DNA from: Selaginella moellendorffii
Lineage: Eukaryota > Plantae > Lycopodiophyta
Reading direction: 5' to 3'
DNA length: 64,000 bases
Assembly (NCBI RefSeq): GCF_000143415.4
Contig: NW_003314346.1
Coordinates: 523,515 to 587,514, forward strand
This document shows, piece after piece, positions 7,133 through 64,000 of this stretch. Each line of letters opens with the position of its first letter. Positions within the stretch are counted from its first letter, which is position 1. A program made the position numbers and the translations under genes. The notes beneath the pieces were generated by a model. The model saw nothing but the letters and a program-made list of their open reading frames with translations, had not been told where the DNA came from and made no database searches.

Positions 7133-9088
7133 ATGAATCGCCAGCAATGGCTGGATCGCATCAAGGCCTCGAGCAGGAGCGCGCCGCGATGTGGCGAGAT
7201 CTTGAGCCTGCTGATCCAGGAGCAAGAGCAAGAAAAGCAAGATTTGCCCGTGTGGAACAAGCTGATCGAGACGCTTGGGCGATTGGGGAACATCACGCAG
7301 GCGAGGCGCGCATTCGATGCCATTGCCGCCAAGGATGCCTTCTCGTGGGTGATCATGCTCTCGGTCTACTCGCGGAATGGGCAAGTGGAAGAGGCCAGGA
7401 AGATCTTCGACGCCATGCCCGGCAAGAACACCGTGGCTCTCAATGCGATGCTGGCGGCGTATGCCAGGAATGGTCTCGTCGGGGACGCTAAGAAGTTCTT
7501 CGATTCCTCCATTACTAATGGGAACCTCATCGCCTGGAACACTCTTCTCGCGGCATATGCCCAAAACGGGCACCTGGATCGAGCAAAGACGATCTTTGAT
7601 TCCATGCCCGCGCATGATCTTTGCTCCAGCACTGCGATGGTTGATGCCTTTGGGGAGATTGGCCTCCTGGGCGATGCTAGAAGAGTGTTTGATGGAATGA
7701 AGCTTCGAGATCTCGTGACTTGGAATGCTATGATCTCTGCGCTTGCCCGGAGCGGGCATTTCGAGGAGTGTCGAGAGCTGTTTGATAAGCTTCCTTTGCA
7801 GAGCTTGGTATCTTTCACTGCTGTGCTGGGAACTTTTGCGCAACAAGGGGATTTGGAGGTTGCAAAGATTCTTTTCGACGAAATGCCCGAATGGGATCTT
7901 GTGTCGTGGAACGCCATGATTTCACTGTATGCCCAAAGCGGGCATTTTGACAGAGCAAAGGAGATGTTTGATCTGATGCCCAAGAGGGATGTTTTCACCT
8001 GGACGGCAATGCTTGTCGCTACAATCACTTCTCAGGGCTTGCGAGAGGCAAAGCTTTTGTTTGATCGAATGCCAGAGAGAAGTATAGTCTCTTCGACTGC
8101 GCTTCTTGCCGCATATGCCCAGAGAGGGCATCTCCAAGAATCCAGAGACCTGTACCGCTCGATGCCCGAGAAAGATCTCTACTCCGCCACCGCAATGCTG
8201 GGCGTTCTTGCGCAGCACAGCCTGGTCGGAGAGGCGCAAGGGATTTACGAGAGCATGCCCGAGTGTGATCTCATCTCATCCACGGCAATGCTGGTTGCGA
8301 ATTCCACCCAATCTGTCGATTCCGCGAAAGCAATGCTAGAATCCCTGCCGGACAAGCTCGATCCCACCGCCTGGAACGCGATCATCTCCGCCCTAGCCCA
8401 CAGCGCGCACGGGCTGGAAGAAGCTCGGGCGCTGTTCGATTCCATGCCCCAACGAGATGGCGCTTCGTGGAGCGCGATGCTAGAGGCATATGCCCGGCAT
8501 GGGTATCTTTCCCTGGCTCGGGAGATATTCCAGGGCATCCCACAGCGCGACGACTTCGCGTGGAACTCGATGCTGGCGGCATATTCCCGGAACGGGTATC
8601 TTGCCGAGGCATATGCGGTGTTCGATTCCATGCCCCGCCAGGACTTCGTCGCGTGGAGCTCGATGCTCGCGGCATATTCCTTGAATGGGCATCCTTTGCA
8701 GGCATTGGACGTTTTCGACGAGATGAAGGCCAGCGAGTTTCCCGACGAGGTGTGCTTCGTGCTCGTGCTACTTTCGTGTAGCCATGCCGGGAAAGTCTAC
8801 GACAGCGGCAGGAACTTCGTGTCGATGGCTATGGATTTCGGGATTCAGCCGACAAGGCAGCACTACTGCTGCATGGTCGACTCGCTCGCTCGATCCGGAT
8901 TCGTGCGAGAGGCTCGGGAGCTTGTCGGGAGCATGCCATTTGTTCCAGACTCGGTGGAGTGGACGGCGCTGCTGGGGAGTTGCAAGAACCACGAAGAACA
9001 CCGGGATGGAGCTCTGGCGGCCAAGTCGGCCCTTAACTCGGCTCCGGGAGACTCGTCTTCGTATCTGCTGCTTGCGAGCTTTGTGTGA
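7133..9088 (+). CDS. Pentatricopeptide repeat protein (PLS class, long run of 31-aa repeats, short E extension, no DYW), intronless
   Basis: 651-aa ORF of repeated FDxMPxRDxxSWNAMLxAYAxNG units. Ends LLSCSHAG, HYCCMVDSLARSG, WTALLGSCKNH, SYLLLASFV*. Confidence 0.96.
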   Translation: MNRQQWLDRIKASSRSAPRCGEILSLLIQEQEQEKQDLPVWNKLIETLGRLGNITQARRAFDAIAAKDAFSWVIMLSVYSRNGQVEEARKIFDAMPGKNTVALNAMLAAYARNGLVGDAKKFFDSSITNGNLIAWNTLLAAYAQNGHLDRAKTIFDSMPAHDLCSSTAMVDAFGEIGLLGDARRVFDGMKLRDLVTWNAMISALARSGHFEECRELFDKLPLQSLVSFTAVLGTFAQQGDLEVAKILFDEMPEWDLVSWNAMISLYAQSGHFDRAKEMFDLMPKRDVFTWTAMLVATITSQGLREAKLLFDRMPERSIVSSTALLAAYAQRGHLQESRDLYRSMPEKDLYSATAMLGVLAQHSLVGEAQGIYESMPECDLISSTAMLVANSTQSVDSAKAMLESLPDKLDPTAWNAIISALAHSAHGLEEARALFDSMPQRDGASWSAMLEAYARHGYLSLAREIFQGIPQRDDFAWNSMLAAYSRNGYLAEAYAVFDSMPRQDFVAWSSMLAAYSLNGHPLQALDVFDEMKASEFPDEVCFVLVLLSCSHAGKVYDSGRNFVSMAMDFGIQPTRQHYCCMVDSLARSGFVREARELVGSMPFVPDSVEWTALLGSCKNHEEHRDGALAAKSALNSAPGDSSSYLLLASFV

Positions 9089-9192
9089 TCACGATGAACG
9101 AGGCTAGATCATCTGCACCGAGGAAAAAGAAAAGTCACTACTATACAAAACAAGACCCACCACTGTACACCAAGAATCGCCCAGCTGTGGAG

Positions 9193-11553
9193 CTATGGAG
9201 GATGCTGTTGTCGCCAAACACGTCGGTTACCTGGTCTAGTGGGAAACTTGAAAGCCGGTCTGGTTAACTGAGTCATCTGTAAGGTGTCCTCCGCAAAGAC
9301 CACGTCTGGCTTCGGTGGTGCCCGGCTCCGGCAAGGCTGTTCCAACGTTGTGGTAGCGGTCGTGGTGGCTCTCACATTTTCGGCGGCCTGTTCTTCAGGA
9401 ACTTCCAACGTTCGAAGCCACGCAAGGCACTCCTGGTCTCGCTGCGATCGAATTTCCAGCATCCGTTGCTTGTTCTTGCCCATTGAGTTGAAGTAGCTGC
9501 TGGAGCTTGTGCTCGTCTCGTTGCTTCTAAGTTGCTGCCGCCTGTCGCCCAAGCTTGTGCTTGGCCGCTTGTCGTTGTAGCTCTGGACGGTGACTTCCAT
9601 CTCTTCTGTGACTGTCTCCAGCTTTCTGGATTCGTTCTTCACACGATGGATCTCTCGGTCTGATGATGGAGCAGCGGCAGGAGATACTGCTGGTGGTGAA
9701 GCTTGTGCAGCTATTGTTGCTGTCGCAACAGGAGGAGCTACCGCTGGTGGTGGTGGTGCTGCTGCTACTGTTGCCACTGGTGCTGGTGGCGGTGGTGCTG
9801 CTGCTGCTTCTGCCGCTAGTGCTGCTGGTGGTGGTGGTCCTGGAGCTGAAGGAAAACTTTCATTTGGCTGAGGCAAACTCGCAGGCACTGAAGCCTCGGA
9901 AGTGAAAGCCAGACGCGACGGTGGTCTTGAATAAGGTTCTGGTGACGGTGAACCTCTAGTCTTCTTTTTCGATGCCTTCGAAGACTTCGAAGACTTCTTG
10001 GAGGACTTTGAGGACTTGGACGACTTGGACGCTACCTCCGGCGGCACTGGAACAACAGTATTTGGTTTGGGCTTCTCACATACATCCGAGGCCGAGAGCT
10101 TTCCAAGGTTGAGTTTTGGCACCACCGGGCTGGCGCTCCGGCATCTTGGAACAGCTGCTGGCTTGGCTGAGTGAGAAGATGTCTGGCACCCTTGATCCAC
10201 CGCGACCTGAGTAACCGCGTCACCAGCACCTTCACTTCTATACACAACGTTGTAGTAAGGATCATCTGCTCCTCCACCTCTCAGCTTAAGTCCAGGTATA
10301 GGAACACCTTTTCTAGCGAGTTCCATCAGCTGCTTCTCCGTCCTTGTTATCAATGCTGACAAAGTGAGCGTTCTCCTTTCTACCTTCTCCTTGCTGGCTT
10401 TCTCCATATCGACCAGTTTTTCGAGGCAACTCTTGTGCTCCATAATTCTGTCATAAAGCCTGGTCATTTCTTTTGCCTCTTGCGTTGCCGATTCTGCTGC
10501 CTGCTTGCTTGCATCCATGTCCTCGTTGGCTTTTGTGACAGAGCCTTGTAGAGCCTACAGAATCAAGAACTTTACACTCCTAAAGACAGGAAGGTCGAAT
10601 ACCTGGATGGAGGCATGAAGCCGCTCGTTTGCAAGTTCGAGTATCTTGTTCTTGTCTTTCATGTAATTGATCTCCTTGTTTTCTTTGCTCAGTCGTTGCT
10701 GTGACTTCTTGAGATGCTTGATTACCTCCTGCAATCTTCCCATTTCCCCGGCAAAGACATCTCTTTCAATTTGGATCTCCTGAAACGAGAACAGCAATTT
10801 CTAAAGAGTTAAATTAATAAACCTGAAGCTGAAAAGCTCACTGACTTTTGAATTGGTCACGCGTAAGTCTCGTTCAAGCTGGTATATCTCGTCCTCCTGC
10901 GAGCTACAGAGAGCTTCAAACTTTGCCATCTTCAATCTAAGGCCTACAGAGATTATAAAAAGTAAATGCTGAATGCTTGGAACAATTCAGTTGTAGAACG
11001 TACCCTGAACAATAGCACGCAACCTCGTTGGAGCACCAGTCCGAGGACCCTTTATCCCCAGCTTCTCCAAACTATCCACGTTTTTCTCCAATCTCCTGTA
11101 ATACAGAATGTCCACTGAAACCAATAAAGCCTTGAATCACCAACAAGGAAAATAGAACGCTTCTAGCAAAGAGAAAATAGAGCACCTGTTTTGAAGCCTC
11201 AGCCTGGACGCGTACACCTTTTGCTTCTTGATGAGAGCGTTTCGATCGTTTATCGCTTGAGAGAGCTTCATTATCTCCTCGTAAAGAGACTCCATGTCGC
11301 GCTCCTTGAGAATTTTCATCTTTGGCAGCGGACAAGGCGCGATGAAGGGCGTGGGAGGCCTTGAGGCGCCTCCCCTGGACATGCCACTTTGCGGTGTTCT
11401 AGCCCTGGTACCCAAGCTTCCGGCGGTCACAGGCCTTGGAGGCATGTCCTCGATTTCCCCAGGACCCCATTCCTGGAAAACAAAATCATCTTCTTCATCG
11501 TCGTCCTCAATGCTGGACGACCACACTGGACTGGTGCTCGTTGGCCTCGCCAT
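9193..11553 (-). CDS. Uncharacterised coiled-coil protein with Pro/Ala-rich disordered C-terminal half (spliced)
   Basis: ORFs 11137-11553, 10555-10797 and 9193-10518 are separated by short GT-AG introns. Heptad-like E/K/L-rich segments are followed by a low-complexity PPPA/AVA tract. Confidence 0.7.
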
Positions 11554-54550: not shown

Positions 54551-55214
54551 TCTCACAGTGTCGCTGGTGGGAGTGTGGACCATATTTGAGCTCACGAGTT
54601 GAAGAGTTGAGCTCACGAGTTGAGCTCAATTTTCAATTGTAATTTAGTACAAACATTATAAACTTTAAAATTTTAAAGTTATGGCGAACTTAATAATTTC
54701 ATAACTCTCTATATATTATATAGATAAAAATGTTCTAAAGGACACTTCTTGTTCTAATAATTTAAATATTTACTACATGCAATAATAGAGACGTTTGTTA
54801 GAATATAAAATAAAATGTTTACAAAAAGATTATTCTTGTCACTTCTTTAAATTTGTACTCTGTGCTTTCTAGCTAGTAAATGTCAGGTTCGTCAGAATTT
54901 TTAAAGTATGAAATTTGAATTAAGATTCTATATAAGGCCATATAACCATTTGAAAGGAAAAAAAAACAACTGTGATGGTACATATGCTCTCACAATACAT
55001 TGGAACATCATACACCCGAAAGACTATCACGAAATATTTTTTGAGAGGGTAAAGACAAAAATGGAGACTCACAAATACTATGAGTAGTATTGCGAAAAGA
55101 ACCTCACAAGTCTATGAAATGAAAAGTGAAATAATAAAATATTTTTATTAATTATATAAGGTATAATTAGTTTATATTATTGATAGAGAATAAACATCGA
55201 TAGTGCTGGAAAAT

Positions 55215-58200
55215 CTAATTAGCTCCAAAAATTTTCTGCAACTCGGCAATAGTAAGGCTTGCTTGGTGTATATAAATATCCACTTTAGGATCCTGGTGCA
55301 AAATGTTGATGAAGATGTAGTACATATGCTTGCAAGGAGCATATGCCTTCCCATGTTCCTCGCGCTTCGTAAAGTCTGGACATGTGCAAGAAGGAAAGTC
55401 TTGAATGGCAATTGTGTACTCTCCACCTTCTGTTTTGACTGTGTACTCTTTTGCAAGCGCAGTGATGTACTTCGTGGAGAGAATCTCACACTCAAGTGTT
55501 TGAGCCAAGTTTATTTTACCTTGCTTCTGCTTGGAGACGGTACCAATAAATTTAACTGCCTTACCTTTTCGTGCTGGCCTCCTATGCATCTCTGTAGGAA
55601 TAGTCTTGGTTCTGTCACTCATATCTCCAACTCTCCTCTCAAGATTGAAACCAGATTTCTCAAGGTTTTCAATCTCATCCGAGGTGAGCGCAACCCCATT
55701 AGCAACCGGCCATTCTTTAGGTACTGCATCAGGTTTAGTCACTATAGTGTCTTCAAGCCGCTTTGTATGGTTGACATCAGAGTTGTAGCAATATAACCAA
55801 CACCATCTTGAAAATCCTGCTTGCTTTCGTTCCCCATGGAAACATGGGGCTGGAACAGAAGCAGACTTATCACCACGGATCCAAGCCCAACACTTGCCCC
55901 TTGGAAGCATCCCCACACACCTTACATTTGATTTCGCTGACACTTGACAGATTGCCCATTGCTTCGGCTCCACACTATGATAAGCAATTTCAACCTGCTG
56001 TGATGCACTTTCTTCATCAGCCACTTGAGGTGGTTCGGTTCTAGGGCGATGTCTTGGAGCAGAATGATACTCAACATCAGGCCTGTGAGAGCTTTTTGCT
56101 CCAAGATCCGTGCCAACATCTTCACCAGCAAAGGAAAATCAATGCTTTGAGCGGACGGTCTTCATATCACCAATAGAAGCCCAAGGAGTGTACTCCATAG
56201 ATGTGCTGTGGACCACTTCCTCTACTGCAGTTGCCATTGTTCGTGCTGGTGGTGTCACTTTCTTCTTCATCCGATCGTGTAACATCTCAACCGAAGGTCC
56301 TGTTCCCATATATCTTCCTTCCTCAAATGCCAAGGCTTTTGAAGACTGTTCTACAGTGCGTATCAAATATGATAGACATGCTTCATATAGACTCATCTTC
56401 CCTTTCCCTGCCTCAGAGGAACGCCAGCTCCAATGTTTACTCTCTGAGAGATTCACAGTTGGGGTGTATGCAAGATCCTCAAGTGGTTGATCCTTATAAA
56501 AAGATGATATTAAAAAGCAATAAAAAGAGAGGAAAAAAAGAAAAACCAACCTGAAAAGAGTGATGTCCCCATTGGAACATTCTAACTTCCCACCACCCCA
56601 ACCACGACTCAAGTTGTGGTAGACAACTTACGTCAGTATGGCCATCTTCACGCCACCACATTCGGATCTCGTTTTCTTTTGCCTCATGCTCTTCTTCAAA
56701 AGGTGCAGCCTGCCATTATTTGCACAACTCCTTAAATGTTAATTGGAAATCTGGCTTAATAAGGTGGTAGTGTTGGTTTAGGCTTTGAGCCCAATGGAAC
56801 TCACAAGTCCTCTCACGACCTTCTAGGGGTAGACCATTCCCAAAGACTGCCCGGACACCATTCCAATTAGCCCCAGCCCCATCTGCCATGAAACCGCGAA
56901 AGTTGGCAGGCTTACCAATCCACTTCAATACAATGTCGGAGAGGGACTTCCAAAATATTTCTTGAGCCATCTGGTCTTGTACTTTAAACTCTGCTGTTGC
57001 AATTGTCAAGTTACAACGTAGTCTGAGAAAAGTGCAATGTTTAAAACCATTTTAAGATAATGAGAAAAAAAAACTACCTCGGATCATACACATGAGCTCC
57101 CATGGTTGTCCAACCTGCCACCCGCTCCATATGGTCAAAATATACCCATGCATTAGCAAGGTCACTCGACCCAGACATATCCATTCGGGAAACAAAATCC
57201 ACACCAGAGGTAGGGCCCATGGTAGACATTTTGAAAATGAAGGGGCGCTCTTGCTCACTAACGACTTGATCTGGAAATAAACTCCCATGGATAAACTCAT
57301 AGGGACAAGTCTATTTTAGTTCAAGGATTGAGTCGATTTTTTATTGGAGTTTCCCCTCTCGAGATTCACACATCCAAGACTTTATCCTAAATAAAACAAA
57401 ATGTAAGAGAGATACTATTGAAAAGTATGTAATAATATTTTCATACCTCCTGAGGCTAGTTGCAGGTTGCACATGTCGTAGTAACTCCCGCAAGCTAGCC
57501 TCATCCAGTTGAGTATTCTTGTAGTCCGGATCAAGTAAAGTATTTGCGATAAAATCCTTGAGCACTGTCTTCTGAACATGCTTCGGAGTTGCAGATGAGT
57601 TTCTCACAGTCTCTATCTGCACTGCATCTTTGAAATGGTTGACTGAACTCCTTTGTATCCCTTCCTGCATTGGATGTGTGTGCATGCCAATATGTACTAT
57701 AGCTCTACCAACCTCTCCATCCCGTGGAAGAAAATAGTACATCTTGGCCCCGCAAATGGCACGACACAATGGAGCATTCTTGCAAAACCGACACTTGAAT
57801 CCAACACCAATGGTGTCACAGAGGGGAGGATTGGTTGCAGATCCTTCAAAAAATATGGAGTTTTTACCGCACTCTTGATTGCATGTTTTATTCACACAAT
57901 CCAAATACCCACCACAATGAACCATGGACACTGTGCCTTTGAAATGCTGGAAATGTGTGGTCTTGATCTTGCACCAGTTGTGGACATCCTGCTTCGTCTC
58001 CATCCCCTTTCGTTTGGAGCTGACAAAAGGTGGTAGTTCAAAGAAGATATTGCCATTGTATGTAGATGGGAGCTCGCTAACAGGCCTATGCAGAAAGGAA
58101 CGAACATTGATAGAGAGGTGGGAAAACTGGAAAGCGTTGCAAACAACTTGGAATATCAGTGAAGTTGGAGTTTGGAAATTCTTGGCTCGCACTGGACTAA

Positions 58201-59137
58201 CATCTCCACTAGAACTAGAAGAGGAAGAAATGATGATGACCGACTCTTGCTTCACATTCACTTTAGCAGGATCACAGCCTCGCACTTTGATTGGAGATCC
58301 AAAAACTCGAATCTCTTTCGACTTGGAATGTTGCAAATCCCAATGTTGTCCACTGTAAGCAACCAAAGAGAACGACTTGAGAGGCGATCCATGGGGTTCA
58401 AATATAGAGGGAAAGGGCCCATGAACAAGAGTGCACCCTTTTTTCCAATCGGTTAAGGGTCTTGGGATATTTGGGGTTAAGCGTCCTTGGGTTTGAATAG
58501 TACTGGGCTGGGTGACCTCCCGGGAAGTCCAAACTCAAGAGCTTACATTTGGTATCAGAGGGGTCTCGGGTCCGACTCTGTTGGTTGGCTAAGGGAATCG
58601 CACCACATATTGATTGACATCTGGCTGGTCCAGTTTGCTCCCGCTGGGCTCGACCCGAGGGGTAGGGTGTCAAGAGAGCGGGGCTCTCGGGAGAGCTGCG
58701 GCTCTCAGCTTCCGTTCACGAGGGCGTGAACTTGCAGGGAAGCGTGGTGGATTGTAAGCAACCAAAGAGAACGACTTGAGAGGCGATCCATGGGGTTCAA
58801 ATATAGAGGGAAAGGGCCCATGAACAAGAGTGCACCCCCTTTTCCAATCGGTTAAGGGTCTTGGGATATTTGGGGTTAAGCGTCCTTGGGTTTGAATAGT
58901 ACTGGGCTGGGTGACCTCCCGGGAAGTCCAAACTCAAGAGCTTACATCCACCTTCACCTACACTCGAAAGAAGAAACTCTGATCATTCAACTACACCAAT
59001 GTTGTTGCGAATCACAGCTTCCAATGAAATAGAACCGAGAGAAAGATCGAAACGTCAGCAAAGAAAACTTTATGAAATAAGACTCTGGGAGATAGAAAGC
59101 GGTGGGTGATCTTGGTAATGCAAAAGGAAGCCCTCCA
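55215..59137 (-). pseudogene. Mutator-superfamily (MULE) transposase with N-terminal GCM-like zinc domain and C-terminal SWIM finger; disrupted
   Basis: CGGYLDCVNKTC...CRFC...CGAKMYYF...HIGMHTHP (GCM/WRKY-like); VYFDH, FMADGAGANWNGVRAVFG, TCEFHWAQSL (CxFH) and TVNLSESKH (DDE core); SCTCPDF...PCKHMYYIF (SWIM). In-frame stops at 56716 and 56139, with a Cassandra insertion in a 5' exon. The start is approximate. Confidence 0.85.
58354..58946 (+). mobile_element. Cassandra-type TRIM retrotransposon (593 bp) with 5S rRNA-derived segment in both LTRs
   Basis: LTRs 58354-58547 and 58753-58946 (194 bp, TGTAAGC...GCTTACA, 2 differences). PBS TGGTATCAGAG at 58550, PPT before 58753, TSD TCCAC. The LTR segment GTTAAGCGTCCTTGGG..AATAGTACTGGGCTGGGTGACCTCCCGGGAAGTCC matches the plant 5S rRNA internal control region. 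Confidence 0.95.
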
Positions 59138-59860
59138 TTTTGTTGCCTTTAGGTTTTGGAACTCTGAACTTTTATAACGAAATGTCACCTCACATGTGCT
59201 ATGCCATTATGTGAAAAGATAGGGCGATTTTATTCTAGGATCTAACATCGATAATGTTGTTATAATAAATTCTGTATGAAGTATATAGGACTATGTTGTA
59301 CAATATTAAAAGTCTATATACATTGAATTCAAAAACATACTCAAATTTATTATATGCACTAACTTTTGGTAGAACGGAAAGAAATATCACCTCAAGCATG
59401 TGCCATAATATGAAAGATAGGAATGATTTTATTCTAGGATTTACCATCAATCAATTGTTGCCAAATAAATTAAATATTGTACATATTTTCAGTACTTCAT
59501 TAAAGCTAGAAATCATCACATTCTTCTGAACTCATTTAAATATATTCCATCTTTGTACTACCATCTATCACCTATAGTAAATTATCTATATACATTGCTT
59601 TGGAAATAACACCTTACGATTTAATAATCTTATATTTTCTAACAATTTCGTACTTTGATCAATTCAACACATGCGTCTGTGACATTATTTCACATTATGA
59701 CATAGTCATATTAGAGCACACCTCCATTATTAAATTACAATTCAAAAGGACTTTGTCATGTGATCAAATCTAGGGCGGAATAGAAATTGTACAGTGCTAG
59801 ATTTATTATTTATTGTATAGTGAAGATTTACTGCATCCATGATGAACGGCTGTGATGAAA

Positions 59861-59900
59861 GTTAGGTTAGGGTTAGGGCAGCCGCCGGCATTAGGGTTTT
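59861..59900 (+). promoter_or_regulatory. Telo-box-like TTAGGG(TT) cluster just upstream of ATG 59944
   Basis: gttaggttagggttaggg...ttagggtttt. Similar AACCCTA/TAGGGTTT motifs sit near the starts of host genes in this window (~2120, 5800, 12199, 21405). Confidence 0.5.
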
Positions 59901-59989
59901 ACAGAAAGTATCGCAGGAGATTGGGAGTGACTGCGGGAATAGAATGCCGCCAAGAGTAAGTTTTTTCTCCTCCTCCACTCCCTCTCCTC

Positions 59990-60790
59990 CCCGCCCAGCG
60001 CCCCCGCGCCCATGCCATGCCCAGCGCCACCACGCCTAGCACTACTGCACGCACACCACGCCATGCTTAGCACCGCCACTGCCCAGGGCTGCCGAGCGCC
60101 GCCCACTGCCATGCCACGCCCAGCGCAGCGCTGCCTAGGTCCGCCGCTGCCCAGCACCAGCGCTGCCTAGGTCCGCCGCTGCCATGCCGTCGCTGCCCAG
60201 CACCGCCACTGCCCAGCATCACCCACGCCACGCCACGCCACGCCAGCGCCGCGCTGCCTAGGCACCCAGCACTGCCGCTGCAAGTGCCCAGGCCGGGCAT
60301 TTGGCTGGGCACTCCGCCTGGGCCAGCCAAGTCCACACAGGCCGGCCAAGGCACTTGGCCGGCAATGGTGCCAAGTGCTTGTGCCAAATGCCCACGCTGG
60401 GCATTTGGCGCGAGCCAGCTAAGTCCAAGCGCCAAGGCCAACTGCCCGTGAGCCGGCCTTGGCGCTTGGAGGTGGGCCGGTTCGCCAGCGAACCGGCCCG
60501 CCTCCAAGTGCCAAGGCCAGTGTGCACCAAGTGCCCGGCCCGGGCATTTGCCCCGAGCCGGCCTTGGCACTTGGAGGCGGACCGGCGCCCGCACCAACTG
60601 CCAAGGCCAACTGCCCGTGAGCCGGCCTTGGCGCTTGGAGGAGGGCCGTTTCGCCAGCGAACCGGCCCGCCTCCAAGCGCCAAAGCAAGGTTCTCGGGCG
60701 GTTGGCCTTGGTGCAGGCCGGCCAAGGTGCTTGGGGGAGGCCCGGTTCGCTGGCGAACCAGCGCCTGCACCAAGCCCACACCTTGTTCCC
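59990..60790. repeat. GC-rich array of short tandem repeats and nested palindromes
   Basis: 31-bp-arm inverted repeat at 60455-60518, a second copy at 60624-60687 (169-bp period), a perfect GCCGGCCAAG-gca-CTTGGCCGGC at 60341-60363, and tandem GCGCTGCCTAGGTCCGCCGCTGCC at ~60128 and ~60160. Confidence 0.92.
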
Positions 60791-60994
60791 CTCTTCTTAT
60801 GCATTTATAATTTATAATGAGTTCTTTTTTTTTTCAGAAACAGAAGCAACTACAAAAGGAGAGGGATGTTGGATCAAAAAGAAGACATGAGGAAGATGAG
60901 ATCCAGGACGACAATCAAGTTGACCTTTAGATAGAGATTTCCATAGCGACAACTCTACCGTCTTCCCAACCACATAGCTCCAGTCCACATGCAC

Positions 60995-61175
60995 CCCCAC
61001 CACTGCCATCGATGCCACCACCACCATTACCATCGCCACCACCGCCACCACCATTACCACCACTGCTACCACCACCATCATCACCACCATTACCACCAAC
61101 ACTGCCACCATCATCACCACCACCAGCGCAACCATTGTCATCACTACCATTGCTGCCACAACCACAAATGCCACT
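60995..61175 (+). repeat. Imperfect (CCA/CAC)n trinucleotide tract encoding a Pro-rich linker
   Basis: Directly visible; reads PPPLPSMPPPPLPSP in the frame of the exon starting at 60838. Confidence 0.85.
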
Positions 61176-63393
61176 ACTCTAACATATTCACAAAATATGG
61201 CAGAAACGGAGTAGTGCCCAAGTGCGCCTGATGGCGGTGTTGGGCCCGAGTCGGGGGGCTAAATCTGATAATGGTGCTACTGGAGGTGTAGCTGAAGCTG
61301 AAAGAGAAGTGGAGCTACCTGAACATATTGTCGACAAGCGCTTCCAAGAGACAGTTTTGAGAACTAAAGAGAAGGCCATTCACACGACTCTGGAGTCTCT
61401 CAAGTGGGAAGGCCCGGGGCACATGATCCGAGAAATCCCACTATGTCGATTCACTCAGACAAGCATCGTTCGGTCTGCTTCACCGCACTTCGTCAACATG
61501 GATATCTATAGTCTGTACAAACAGAATGGCCTTGGGACAAACATAGGTATGTTCCTTGTTTCGGTTTTCAAGCCAGGAACGACAAATACCCTCTCGGTGT
61601 CACCGGAAATCGAGAGGGATTGGGATGACATTTGGAAAATGAAGTCCCGCGAATTTGACATCAAGCTTATGAGCCATCCTGAGACTCAACAATTTGTGGG
61701 GAAAATGTTCTACATTATCGACGGGAATCATCGCTGGTGCGCGTGGATGAAGTGCATCCAAGAATGCTTCCGAGACGATCCTGTCTATCACATCAATGTT
61801 CCGGTTGGACATGTACACGCGAGAGGATCTCTAGATGTGGCAAGGCTTGTAATAGCTTGCCACAAAATTAATGCATAAGTACCTCTCCCTCTTCAATCAC
61901 TTTTAACAATTTGTGTTTTGCAGACTGGGACAGTTTGCAATGCAGAAACAAAGCCTAGTACATGATATTGAGTAGATCCGGTTTCTTGCCAATCTCGACG
62001 AGGATGCAGTCCGCAGCCACTATGGTGATGATTTAGCATCACTTATTTGGCATCAACGAGGTCATCAGGATGCTAGAGTGTTTTGATTTCTCTAAAGACT
62101 ATAACAGCTACTTCCCCTCGCAGGTGACGAAGTCCCATCCCTGGTGTGCTCACTCACTCTAGAATCTCCCTACAAGCTGAATGAAACTTTATAGATGGTA
62201 CAAGAATCCAATGGCTTTTATGACAGCTGTGTGGAGTAAGGTATGTTCTTTTAAGTATACTTCTTATCATAGAATGTTTGTGTTGTCTTCAGCCATTGGT
62301 GAAGATTAAGCAAGATGCATATGCACAGTTGCATCGAGCTGAAAATGATCAAGAACTCTCAGAGCATTTAGCTGCAATTGACAAGAAAATCAACAGCACA
62401 AAGAAGACAAAGCTAAAGAAATTACTTAGTGTGGCTGACCCTCGATGCCCAAAGGAGTGGTTCGATATTATAATAGAGATTGCTTGTCATGAAAGTAAGT
62501 ATTGTTTGTATTTACATGAAGGTTCTCACAAAAGTTAATTTTTAGTGGGCAAAACTCCAGATGAGATTATTTACAACATCTCAAAGTCAAAGCTTATATA
62601 TGAGGAACAGGTACACATTCTGAACGACCTCAATAGCAGACTCAGAGAAGGAGAAAAATGTTTGGACAGTATGATGGAGACTGTGATGAGGAAGACCATC
62701 TATATTTCACAAACTGTATATGAAGGGGAGATGTTTCTAGCGCCTTTCATAGGGGATGATCCTGAGCAACTTCCATTTAAGGACTTCGTCACCATTGAGC
62801 TTACAAAACTCGGAGAGGACTGGCTGCCAAAGAAGGCCACAAGCACGACTCCATTTGATAAACAACTTGGCCAACCTTACTTCATGCATCGAGCAGCTTT
62901 TAGGTAACATACAATTTCTCAACTATACTCAATTATTTATATTCTATTATAAAGCTCTATTTCGTTAAAGTGGGAATTGTCATTATCCCACTTGTAAAAT
63001 AAGGTTTCCAAACCTTTATATAGTATATAAATATAACAAAATTCAACTGCATTGAGGCACATGCCATTTTATTTTAAACAAGGAAATGTCTACTCAATCA
63101 CTTCTCCTCCCCCTGCCACTGCTTCACCTCTCTCTTCTCCTTGTCATCGTCGTCCAATTTCTTTCCATCCTTTTAATATTGGCTCAGTTGCTCCGAGTCT
63201 AGGTGGAGCCCAAGTCCCCATTCAATCTTTACTTTCCCATTATTAATAAAACAACTTCGTAGACTTCCAATAACATGCTGTAACACTTCTAGTATAATGC
63301 AAATCCTCTCAAAGAATTGTCTTTTAATATTAATACAATGGCATGGAACCCCATGCCATAATAAGTTACATTTTTAAATAAATACATGCCATC

Positions 63394-64000
63394 TCAGACT
63401 GTTATTTTTTGCCTCCAACGCCTATACAATAATCTTGGAATTTCATCACTCTCCACACTATCAGGATTTAAACCCAATAGTAATGCCATCTCTTCTCTAA
63501 TACGTCCACGCTCATGTTCAGTGGTCGAAGAACCCATCCGGTTGAGCAGATTATGGAGATGCGGATAGTGCTTGGCTAGACAATATACATGCCATAAATG
63601 ATGACTGGTGTCTGTCCGATCAAATGGCTTCTGATATACCGTTCCATCTGCCATTTGGTTGATTTCTGCAGCCACCTCCTGGACTGGCCGGTTCTCTATC
63701 ACCATCGCTCCAAGCCGTTTTGCAAGGTCCCCCAGAACATACGGTTTCTTCTCCCTAGTTTCCATACTACAAGAGATGGGGTGCACTGCATATGTGTGCG
63801 TGTTCGCTGCAGTTTTAATCGGCGAGTCATCGATGATGAGGATTTCACTTGAGCTAGCAGTCCGGTTCATCACTACAGCCTCTGGCTTGACGAAGATGGG
63901 CTTGCTACCCCTCACATGGACCATAGTCAAGCAATCCTCCTGCGTTAGGAGAAAGTCAAATGGTAATATTACTCGCGTCTGATCGTGCATCATCTGTAGC
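63394..64000 (-). CDS. FCP1/NIF-like HAD phosphatase-homology protein, 3' part only (runs off the window)
   Basis: FDFLLTQEDC, KPIFVK and EILIIDDSPIKTAANTHTYAVHP match the C-terminal NIF motif (LLIDDSPxK..N...AI.P). The DxDxT motif would lie beyond the window. Confidence 0.7.
   Translation of the reverse strand, partial: LQMMHDQTRVILPFDFLLTQEDCLTMVHVRGSKPIFVKPEAVVMNRTASSSEILIIDDSPIKTAANTHTYAVHPISCSMETREKKPYVLGDLAKRLGAMVIENRPVQEVAAEINQMADGTVYQKPFDRTDTSHHLWHVYCLAKHYPHLHNLLNRMGSSTTEHERGRIREEMALLLGLNPDSVESDEIPRLLYRRWRQKITV

Follow-up and report, generated by a model that had tools for sequence, protein, structure and literature searches.

A 64,000-nucleotide stretch of Selaginella moellendorffii DNA (contig NW_003314346.1, positions 523,515 to 587,514; hereafter the window, meaning this whole stretch) carries three neighbouring genes at its right-hand end. 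These are a Mutator-type transposase gene, a divergently transcribed gene with the motif YIIDGNHR, and an open reading frame (ORF) resembling NIF/FCP1. Do the three form a single mobile element, and what kind of protein does the IDGNHR gene encode? A reading made from the sequence alone (the sequence-only reading) had taken them as contiguous modules of one transposon larger than 9 kb. All three frames were found where that reading had placed them, but depth and junctions put a boundary at about 62952, so that they do not make up one element. The window probably holds one dead, truncated copy of a two-gene DNA transposon of the Mutator-like element (MULE) lineage with a palindrome array, the NIF-like ORF lying in a separate repeat. 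The lineage is found in bryophytes and lycophytes, and probably in ferns.

The IDGNHR gene, referred to below as the accessory gene, extends from 61222 to 62904 on the plus strand. Its first exon lies in an open frame (61183-61875) closed by a TAA codon (61876-8) and contains the motifs IPLCRF (61435-52) and YIIDGNHR (61711-34). An exhaustive HMMER search yielded 151 homologues of this exon, the named ones coming from Selaginella moellendorffii (51% identity), Adiantum ferns and the liverwort Riccia sorocarpa. An alignment of 43 sequences revealed two conserved blocks, IPLCRL..VR and WDGNHRL.AW. The phosphate-binding G-x-x-R motif is present as DGNHR; across these 43 sequences N169 is invariant, and G168, H170 and R171 are each conserved in at least 90%. 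The AlphaFold (AF2) model computed from the alignment had a pLDDT (predicted local distance difference test) score of 85. When this model was compared with the Protein Data Bank (PDB) by Foldseek, the top 39 rows were all ParB, Noc, KorB, PadC, SbnI or sulfiredoxin (Srx). VIA-align superimposed 90-97 residues on CTP-binding ParB N-domains with Z scores of 8.0-8.3 and a root-mean-square deviation of 2.8 Å; its top 29 rows were all ParB, Noc, KorB, PadC, serine kinase, SbnI or Srx, and unrelated rows scored Z ≤2.8. These comparisons support a ParB/Srx fold for the predicted N-terminal domain, in agreement with what the sequence-only reading had proposed from the IDGNHR signature. Downstream, a profile of the post-ParB region built from 19 homologues matched 62224-62535 weakly (E 0.0047) and in the correct order. 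In a word-index search for homologues, neither the ParB exon nor the N-terminal part of the transposase nor the NIF piece gave a match. Directly upstream of the ParB-like frame lies an imperfect CCA/CAC microsatellite (60985-61176), which, according to the frame read, would be rich in His, Pro or Thr.

The transposase pseudogene is made up of five collinear pieces on the minus strand (58534-57344, 57310-57077, 57051-56719, 56627-56142 and 56138-55218). By tblastn and tblastx, all five aligned with a second Selaginella locus (L001, 8418-5069; 36-64% identity), and four of the five aligned with the Riccia locus L002 (29-41% identity), in which the SWIM piece found no match. The gene reads in the order N-terminal conserved segment (59150-58953), zinc-finger region, DDE core interrupted by a pair of short introns, and C-terminal SWIM motif; the core motifs WTTMGAHVYD, FMADGAGANW and CEFHW (D...D...CxxH) are visible. 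Removal of both introns gives a continuous frame from the catalytic core to the natural stop. In an ESM Atlas search with the piece bearing the second catalytic Asp, most of the nearest Pfam-bearing clusters were MULE, ZSWIM1-3 RNaseH-like or FAR1 (score 0.93). For the Riccia ORF the two top clusters were unnamed (0.96 and 0.94) and the named MULE-type clusters scored ≤0.91, with good recognition values. Together with the finger and SWIM patterns, the Atlas neighbours support a divergent Mutator-superfamily transposase, the class to which the sequence-only reading had assigned it. Pfam searches of all window pieces returned a single match, the sub-threshold one to SWIM. A Zisupton/KDZ assignment was rejected, the Atlas neighbours being MULE and no KDZ Pfam match being obtained.

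The sequence-only reading had also described both genes as decaying by point stops, and this was borne out. The whole transposase gene has four in-frame stops and no frameshift, and the accessory gene has two TAA codons, one closing the ParB exon and one between its middle-domain pieces. A stop in the window (56716-56718, LCK*WQAAP) has a neighbour in the Selaginella locus (at about 6590, LCRE*MDAP), and we considered a programmed stop common to both. The codons are adjacent and not identical, and Riccia reads through, so the idea was dropped; the proximity is probably a coincidence.

Five loci were reached through the ParB homologues, one in Selaginella (L001) and four in Riccia (L002, L003, L004 and L005). 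At four of them (L001, L002, L003 and L005) the same transposase lies upstream of the ParB gene on the opposite strand, 2.3-2.9 kb away; the accessory gene is thus encoded opposite the transposase in the window and in four of the five related loci. The pairing occurs at three of the four Riccia loci, two of which belong to families whose transposases are just 40-65% identical. As judged by sequence comparison, it is conserved across bryophytes and lycophytes. The co-occurrence that the sequence-only reading had suggested looking for elsewhere was therefore found for these two genes, in the same divergent order, in the Selaginella and Riccia loci. The fourth Riccia locus (L004, CM100801.1 22363023-22384994) has a ParB-like gene of 570 amino acids, with no MULE transposase or methyltransferase (MTase)-like part detected within 10 kb, and may represent a fragment or another carrier. 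Copy number and depth were assessed by placing contigs of two DNA runs (X1 and X9) on 58001-64000. Because 13-21 variant contigs covered each position of 59001-62800 in X1, the element is multi-copy. Comparison of the window with itself turned up none of the three genes a second time. Since the element is multi-copy and the same divergent order recurs in Selaginella and Riccia, the transposase and the ParB-like gene are modules of one element. The latter is not a single-copy syntenic host gene, being multi-copy and linked to the transposase in both plants.

In Selaginella and Riccia the ParB gene runs on into a region with a PF01555-like methyltransferase fold, 1.8-2.4 kb downstream of the ParB exon (Selaginella L001 11986-12731; Riccia P0153, residues about 960-1150). 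The PF01555 matches (E 7.6e-4 for Selaginella and 5e-5 for P0153) both fall under the gathering score, and tblastn aligned the Riccia region with the Selaginella locus at E 3.7e-4. Motif I is recognisable as a GxG block (VLDATAGFGS, VIDFAGGWGAT). Motif IV is non-canonical, [D/N]LP[T/D]G, with NLPDG or DLPTG in place of (D/N/S)PP(Y/F/W); to judge from these motifs, the domain would be either a conserved pseudo-enzyme or one of unusual chemistry. Two diverged Riccia families share 58-84% identity over the ParB region and 53-70% over the MTase-like region, against 25-38% for the linkers, a pattern that would fit selection on the ParB and MTase-like domains. In the window, where the gene is cut at about 62952, no tblastn match to the MTase-like domain was obtained at E ≤1. 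A tblastn search of phage genomes with the Riccia ParB-MTase protein gave no match. Three Riccia proteins (P0151, P0153 and P0154) carry the UniRef name 'Trimethylguanosine synthase', probably a misannotation that goes back to the methyltransferase fold.

Arrays of inverted repeats lie beside the ParB-like gene in the window, in Selaginella and in Riccia. In the Selaginella locus the array (9185-9630) again separates the divergent genes. At Riccia L002, nine copies of the 23-nt palindrome ATTCCGGCGAG-N3-CTCGCCGGAAT, spaced 63-144 nt apart, occupy 8494-9371 between the transposase and the ParB-MTase gene. The sites CGGTTC-N6-GAACCG listed for the window in Table 1 have counterparts in the Selaginella intergenic region, where three lie within 258 nt and 0.14 would be expected over the whole 20.8-kb locus. 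The Riccia palindrome differs from this pattern. In X1 the palindrome array of the window has a depth like that of the flanking element. Rfam reported a weak match at 60340-60416 to the bacterial small RNA naRNA4; at 35 bits it falls short of the gathering score (59.5), and the GC-rich palindromes are almost certainly what produced it.

The NIF-like ORF lies on the other side of a sharp change in abundance. Over 59001-62800 the summed word depth was about 4-43 thousand in X1 and 0-22 in X9 (60001-61000 being without X9 contigs). From about 62950 onwards it was 0.64-0.85 million and 240-475, respectively; at the step itself, X1 rises from about 35 thousand to about 0.8 million and X9 from about 15 to 240-475. 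A separate X1 contig joins 58338 to 62952, with another left partner and the identical right breakpoint, and this joint looks like the end of an independently inserted mobile element. The depth step and the shared breakpoint therefore place the NIF-like ORF in a separate element, about 20 times more abundant. No NIF segment was found within 10 kb in the four homologous MULE loci. On these grounds the NIF-like gene is not supported as the third module that the sequence-only reading had made of it.

As to what this ORF encodes, 96 of its 100 nearest ESM Atlas clusters were NIF (score 0.91), and BLASTP aligned it in register with the NIF half of the fern protein P0106 (Adiantum capillus-veneris, KAI5065344.1) at E 0.055; a NIF identity is thereby weakly supported. 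In P0106 a ParB-like domain (195-315) is fused to a NIF domain (955-1129; Pfam E 2.4e-12). Another transposon family may carry a related ParB/MTase-like/NIF cargo gene, of which the window ORF would be the tail. The NIF domain of P0106 has FDVNGV in place of the catalytic motif DxDxT, and its phosphatase activity may have been lost. For the NIF piece of the window, AF2 run on the single sequence gave an unusable model (pLDDT 41), which was set aside.

Table 1. Positions of the features in the window, with strand and supporting evidence.
Feature	Position	Strand	Evidence or remark
MULE-type transposase pseudogene	55218-59150	-	tblastn/tblastx against Selaginella and Riccia, Atlas, Pfam SWIM
SWIM motif CTCPDF...CKH (CxC...CxH)	55326-55388	-	Pfam SWIM E 0.0034, 17.3 bits against a cut-off of 19.6
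In-frame TGA ahead of the SWIM-bearing part	56139-56141	-	
58-nt GT-AG intron after WWEVRMFQWGHHSFQ	56493-56550	-	position kept in Selaginella and Riccia
In-frame TAA, catalytic region	56716-56718	-	sense codon in Riccia
55-nt GT-AG intron between first and second catalytic Asp regions	57023-57077	-	same junction in Selaginella
In-frame stops TAG (57311-3) and TAA (57341-3)	57311-57343	-	Selaginella reads through
WRKY/GCM1-type zinc-finger pattern CRAIC-X22-HTH (CX3C-X22-HXH)	57674-57766	-	regular expression on the translation; pattern alone, no Pfam model
Cassandra-like TRIM, 599 nt, splitting the transposase 5' region	58348-58946		direct repeats, bridging contigs, depth, Rfam
GC-rich (68%) palindrome array between the divergent genes	59956-60837		inverted repeats I1-I10
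Three CGGTTC-N6-GAACCG sites (60478-95, 60647-64, 60743-60)	60478-60760		within 283 nt
ParB/Srx-fold exon of the accessory gene (predicted fold)	61222-61875	+	151 homologues, AF2 model, Foldseek, VIA-align
117-nt insertion, private to the window copy, separating the ParB exon from the coding piece that follows	62074-62190		X9 contig skips it; X1 joint 62067 to 62191
Middle-domain coding pieces of the accessory gene	62224-62904	+	62224-62535, in-frame TAA 62536-8, 62539-62904
Start of a different, about 20-fold more abundant repeat, cutting off or abutting the accessory gene	62952-64000		depth step, X1 joint
C-terminal part of the NIF/FCP1-like ORF	63397-63999	-	runs off the window end; N-terminus beyond 64000

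The homology, the modelled fold, the linkage in the window, Selaginella and Riccia, the multi-copy status, the arrays and the boundary are established by this analysis. The conserved core of the element would then consist of a transposase with a WRKY/GCM finger, DDE core and SWIM motif; a divergent accessory gene encoding, in intact relatives, a putative ParB/Srx-fold nucleotide-binding domain, a conserved helical middle domain and a PF01555-like amino-methyltransferase-fold domain; and an element-specific palindrome array in the 2-3 kb that separate the two genes. The window copy would be a decayed member, its transposase bearing the four point stops and a Cassandra-type TRIM (terminal-repeat retrotransposon in miniature), its accessory gene bearing stops and the 117-nt insertion and ending at about 62952, ahead of the methyltransferase-like part, where another element appears to cut it. 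As to mechanism, we tentatively propose that the ParB-fold domain could act as a nucleoside triphosphate (NTP) switch that loads on the element's own palindromes, and that the methyltransferase-fold domain might in turn act in cis on the element's chromatin or DNA, marking or shielding it for self-recognition or anti-silencing; we regard this as possible, with the odds somewhat against it. The wider notion, which we consider rather unlikely as it stands, is that land-plant MULEs possess a eukaryotic counterpart of parS-ParB: a palindrome-loaded NTP switch with a non-canonical MTase-fold domain (a NIF phosphatase-like one in ferns) that would mark the element in cis or protect it, as a self-recognition module spanning algae and early land plants. 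The regulatory roles that the sequence-only reading gave to the ParB-like and phosphatase-like proteins are likewise putative.

Several observations weigh against parts of this picture. Pfam ParBc did not match the window pieces, and the family profile searched against PDB sequences met no ParB, a chance ribosomal match being its sole hit; the ParB fold assignment therefore rests on the predicted model. The structural alignments end at about ParB residues 128-140, covering the N-domain only, and no helix-turn-helix (HTH) was seen in them after that domain. Pfam MULE (PF10551) and Transposase_mut had no match in the transposase proteins of the window, Selaginella or Riccia, and Pfam NIF (PF03031) did not match the NIF-like ORF even at E 10. 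The palindrome pattern common to the window and Selaginella is suggestive at the sequence level, having been chosen after both loci had been viewed. No terminal inverted repeats (TIRs) or target-site duplications (TSDs) were found in the window, Selaginella or Riccia, so the limits of the element, including the start at 54554 and the length above 9 kb given by the sequence-only reading, are putative. Neither of two RNA-seq runs had reads on the ParB or NIF frames, and in 13 transcriptome runs of the species the fraction of the gene's sampled words present was 0.00-0.01; in the tissues covered, the copies appear to be silent.

Could the three genes nevertheless be modules of one Mutator element larger than 9 kb? 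They are adjacent, and the fern protein P0106 shows that ParB-like and NIF modules travel together somewhere. In principle, abundant deletion derivatives with a terminal region in common might also produce the depth step, a further point against a separate repeat, and the X1 contig joining 58338 to 62952 could be such a derivative, keeping the shared end. Set against this are the roughly 20-fold rise in two independent runs, the absence of a NIF segment from the four related loci, and the orientation of the ORF, which lies on the opposite strand here, whereas the fern NIF domain is fused C-terminally on the same strand. Moreover, the site of the relatives' MTase-like domain is taken up in the window by the other repeat. 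We consider a three-module element quite improbable. That the ParB-like gene is an ordinary host gene, standing beside a transposase by chance, would be in keeping with its exon-like structure and with the Riccia locus (L004) that has the gene and no detectable transposase. It is at odds with the sequence variants at every position in X1, the in-frame stops in the gene and the recurrence of the same divergent pairing in the window, Selaginella and Riccia, and must be regarded as extremely improbable.

A closer rival keeps the two-gene element and gives its parts other functions. The palindromes would be transposase sites, promoter elements, or sources of hairpins or small RNAs, and the ParB-fold protein would aid transposition, for example as a nuclease or kinase-like NTPase. 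In favour of this rival, no HTH was seen beside the ParB N-domain, and GNHR is closer to the GxHR of Srx and serine kinases than to the GERR of ParB. Motif IV of the MTase-like domain is non-canonical, and the arrays sit in the bidirectional promoter region. In red algae, however, inverted-repeat arrays beside ParB-like genes recur on unrelated transposase superfamilies (bioRxiv 10.1101/2025.02.11.637652), which by analogy would tie the arrays to the accessory gene and not to a particular transposase. On balance we find these other functions unlikely, if well worth considering. The two-gene MULE with its palindrome array, cut off by another repeat, remains the reading we prefer.

The sequence-only reading did not recognise the family as a described one, yet accessory genes with ParB-like and PF01555 domains and inverted-repeat arrays have been published (bioRxiv 10.1101/2025.02.11.637652; PMC12477816). 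Red-algal Plavaka, Chondrus Mutator and Zisupton elements carry the accessory genes PAG2 and PAG3 (Petroll et al., bioRxiv 10.1101/2025.02.11.637652); one is ParB-like (best hit 7BNR_B) and another encodes a PF01555 methylase, with tandem inverted-repeat arrays beside the ParB-like gene. The likeness to the present system extends to the status as transposon cargo, the weakly detectable ParB-like N-terminal domain, the PF01555 module, the arrays and a cargo common to several transposase superfamilies; here, 7bnr chains rank second and third in Foldseek, and 7bnr_B ranks second in VIA-align. In red algae, by contrast, the ParB-like domain is fused to a 2-oxoglutarate (2OG)-oxygenase and a second protein combines PF01555 with a SET domain, whereas the land-plant relatives join the ParB-like and PF01555-like domains in a single protein, in which neither SET nor an oxygenase was detected, the PAGs being compared by their published description. 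Like the land-plant relatives, Sola1-1_Ec32 of Ectocarpus has the two kinds of domain in one protein: a 1104-aa gene opposite the transposase encodes ParB-like and N4/N6-methyltransferase domains, proposed to bind and modify its own element (Dinatale et al. 2025, PMC12477816). Sola1 is not a MULE, however; the plant motif IV is [D/N]LP[T/D]G as against (D/N/S)PP(Y/F/W), by which the plant domain may be inactive, and the window copy lacks the MTase-like domain altogether. Green-algal ParB-methylase fusions are also on record (Iyer et al. 2011, as cited in PMC12477816).

With the bacterial CTP clamps ParB, Noc and KorB and their parS sites, the plant system has in common the predicted fold of the N-terminal nucleotide-binding domain and short palindrome arrays nearby. 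Unlike in chromosomal and plasmid ParB, no HTH was seen, the motif is GNHR and not GERR, and neither a ParA partner nor a link through sequence profiles was found; CTP binding is putative. Arabidopsis VANDAL elements resemble the present one as Mutator-superfamily elements with an extra gene, VANC, thought to act on the element's own sequence motifs. VANC is not known to be a ParB-fold protein, and we expect no relation in sequence or fold.

A full-text literature search for ParB/methyltransferase transposon accessory genes found reports from algae and none from land plants. What is added to the known design is a land-plant MULE lineage, the union of ParB and MTase-like parts in a single protein whose motif IV is non-canonical, and a palindrome shared by the window and Selaginella. 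ParB/methyltransferase accessory proteins are a recently proposed route by which algal elements would bind and modify themselves, and the loci in the window, Selaginella and Riccia would extend this design to land plants. Each locus pairs a protein family with a defined palindrome, which supplies specific protein-DNA combinations on which binding, nucleotides and methylation can be assayed in tractable bryophyte or lycophyte material. The window copy, being dead and truncated, has its value as a marker of the family. There is also a warning for annotation, as models of this family labelled ParB-like, 'trimethylguanosine synthase' or 'FCP1 homology' represent transposon cargo and not host genes.

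In the search for termini, several candidates were set aside. A TIR candidate in the window (54784-54809 with 62936-62961; 26 nt, score 27) is weak and AT-rich and straddles the depth boundary, and a tandem 13-mer at 54586 lacks a counterpart at the opposite end. The Selaginella locus offered no TIR candidate. In Riccia, a 33-nt pair lacked a TSD, and another repeat pair was judged to be two separate miniature inverted-repeat transposable elements.

Two secondary insertions interrupt the window copy. The one in the transposase 5' region has 204-nt direct terminal repeats (58345-58548 and 58744-58947) that are 97-99% alike, and the 5S-rRNA-like stretch in each of them (two Rfam 5S_rRNA matches, both at E 6e-4) makes it a Cassandra-type TRIM. 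Contigs of both X1 and X9 join 58348 to 58947 with five shared letters; other copies of the element therefore exist without the TRIM, and the five-letter overlap is consistent with a 5-nt target duplication. The TRIM has 30-100 times the depth of the flanking element (1.0-1.5 million in X1, 650-1300 in X9). In the two RNA-seq runs, reads fell only on the 5S-like parts of the TRIM and on a 66-nt stretch within the 117-nt insertion. This 66-nt core (62122-62187) matched neither Rfam nor a tRNA, and the reads it draws run into unrelated sequence on both sides. The reads on the TRIM are cut at 58478 and 58534, which suggests that they are genuine 5S RNA reads.

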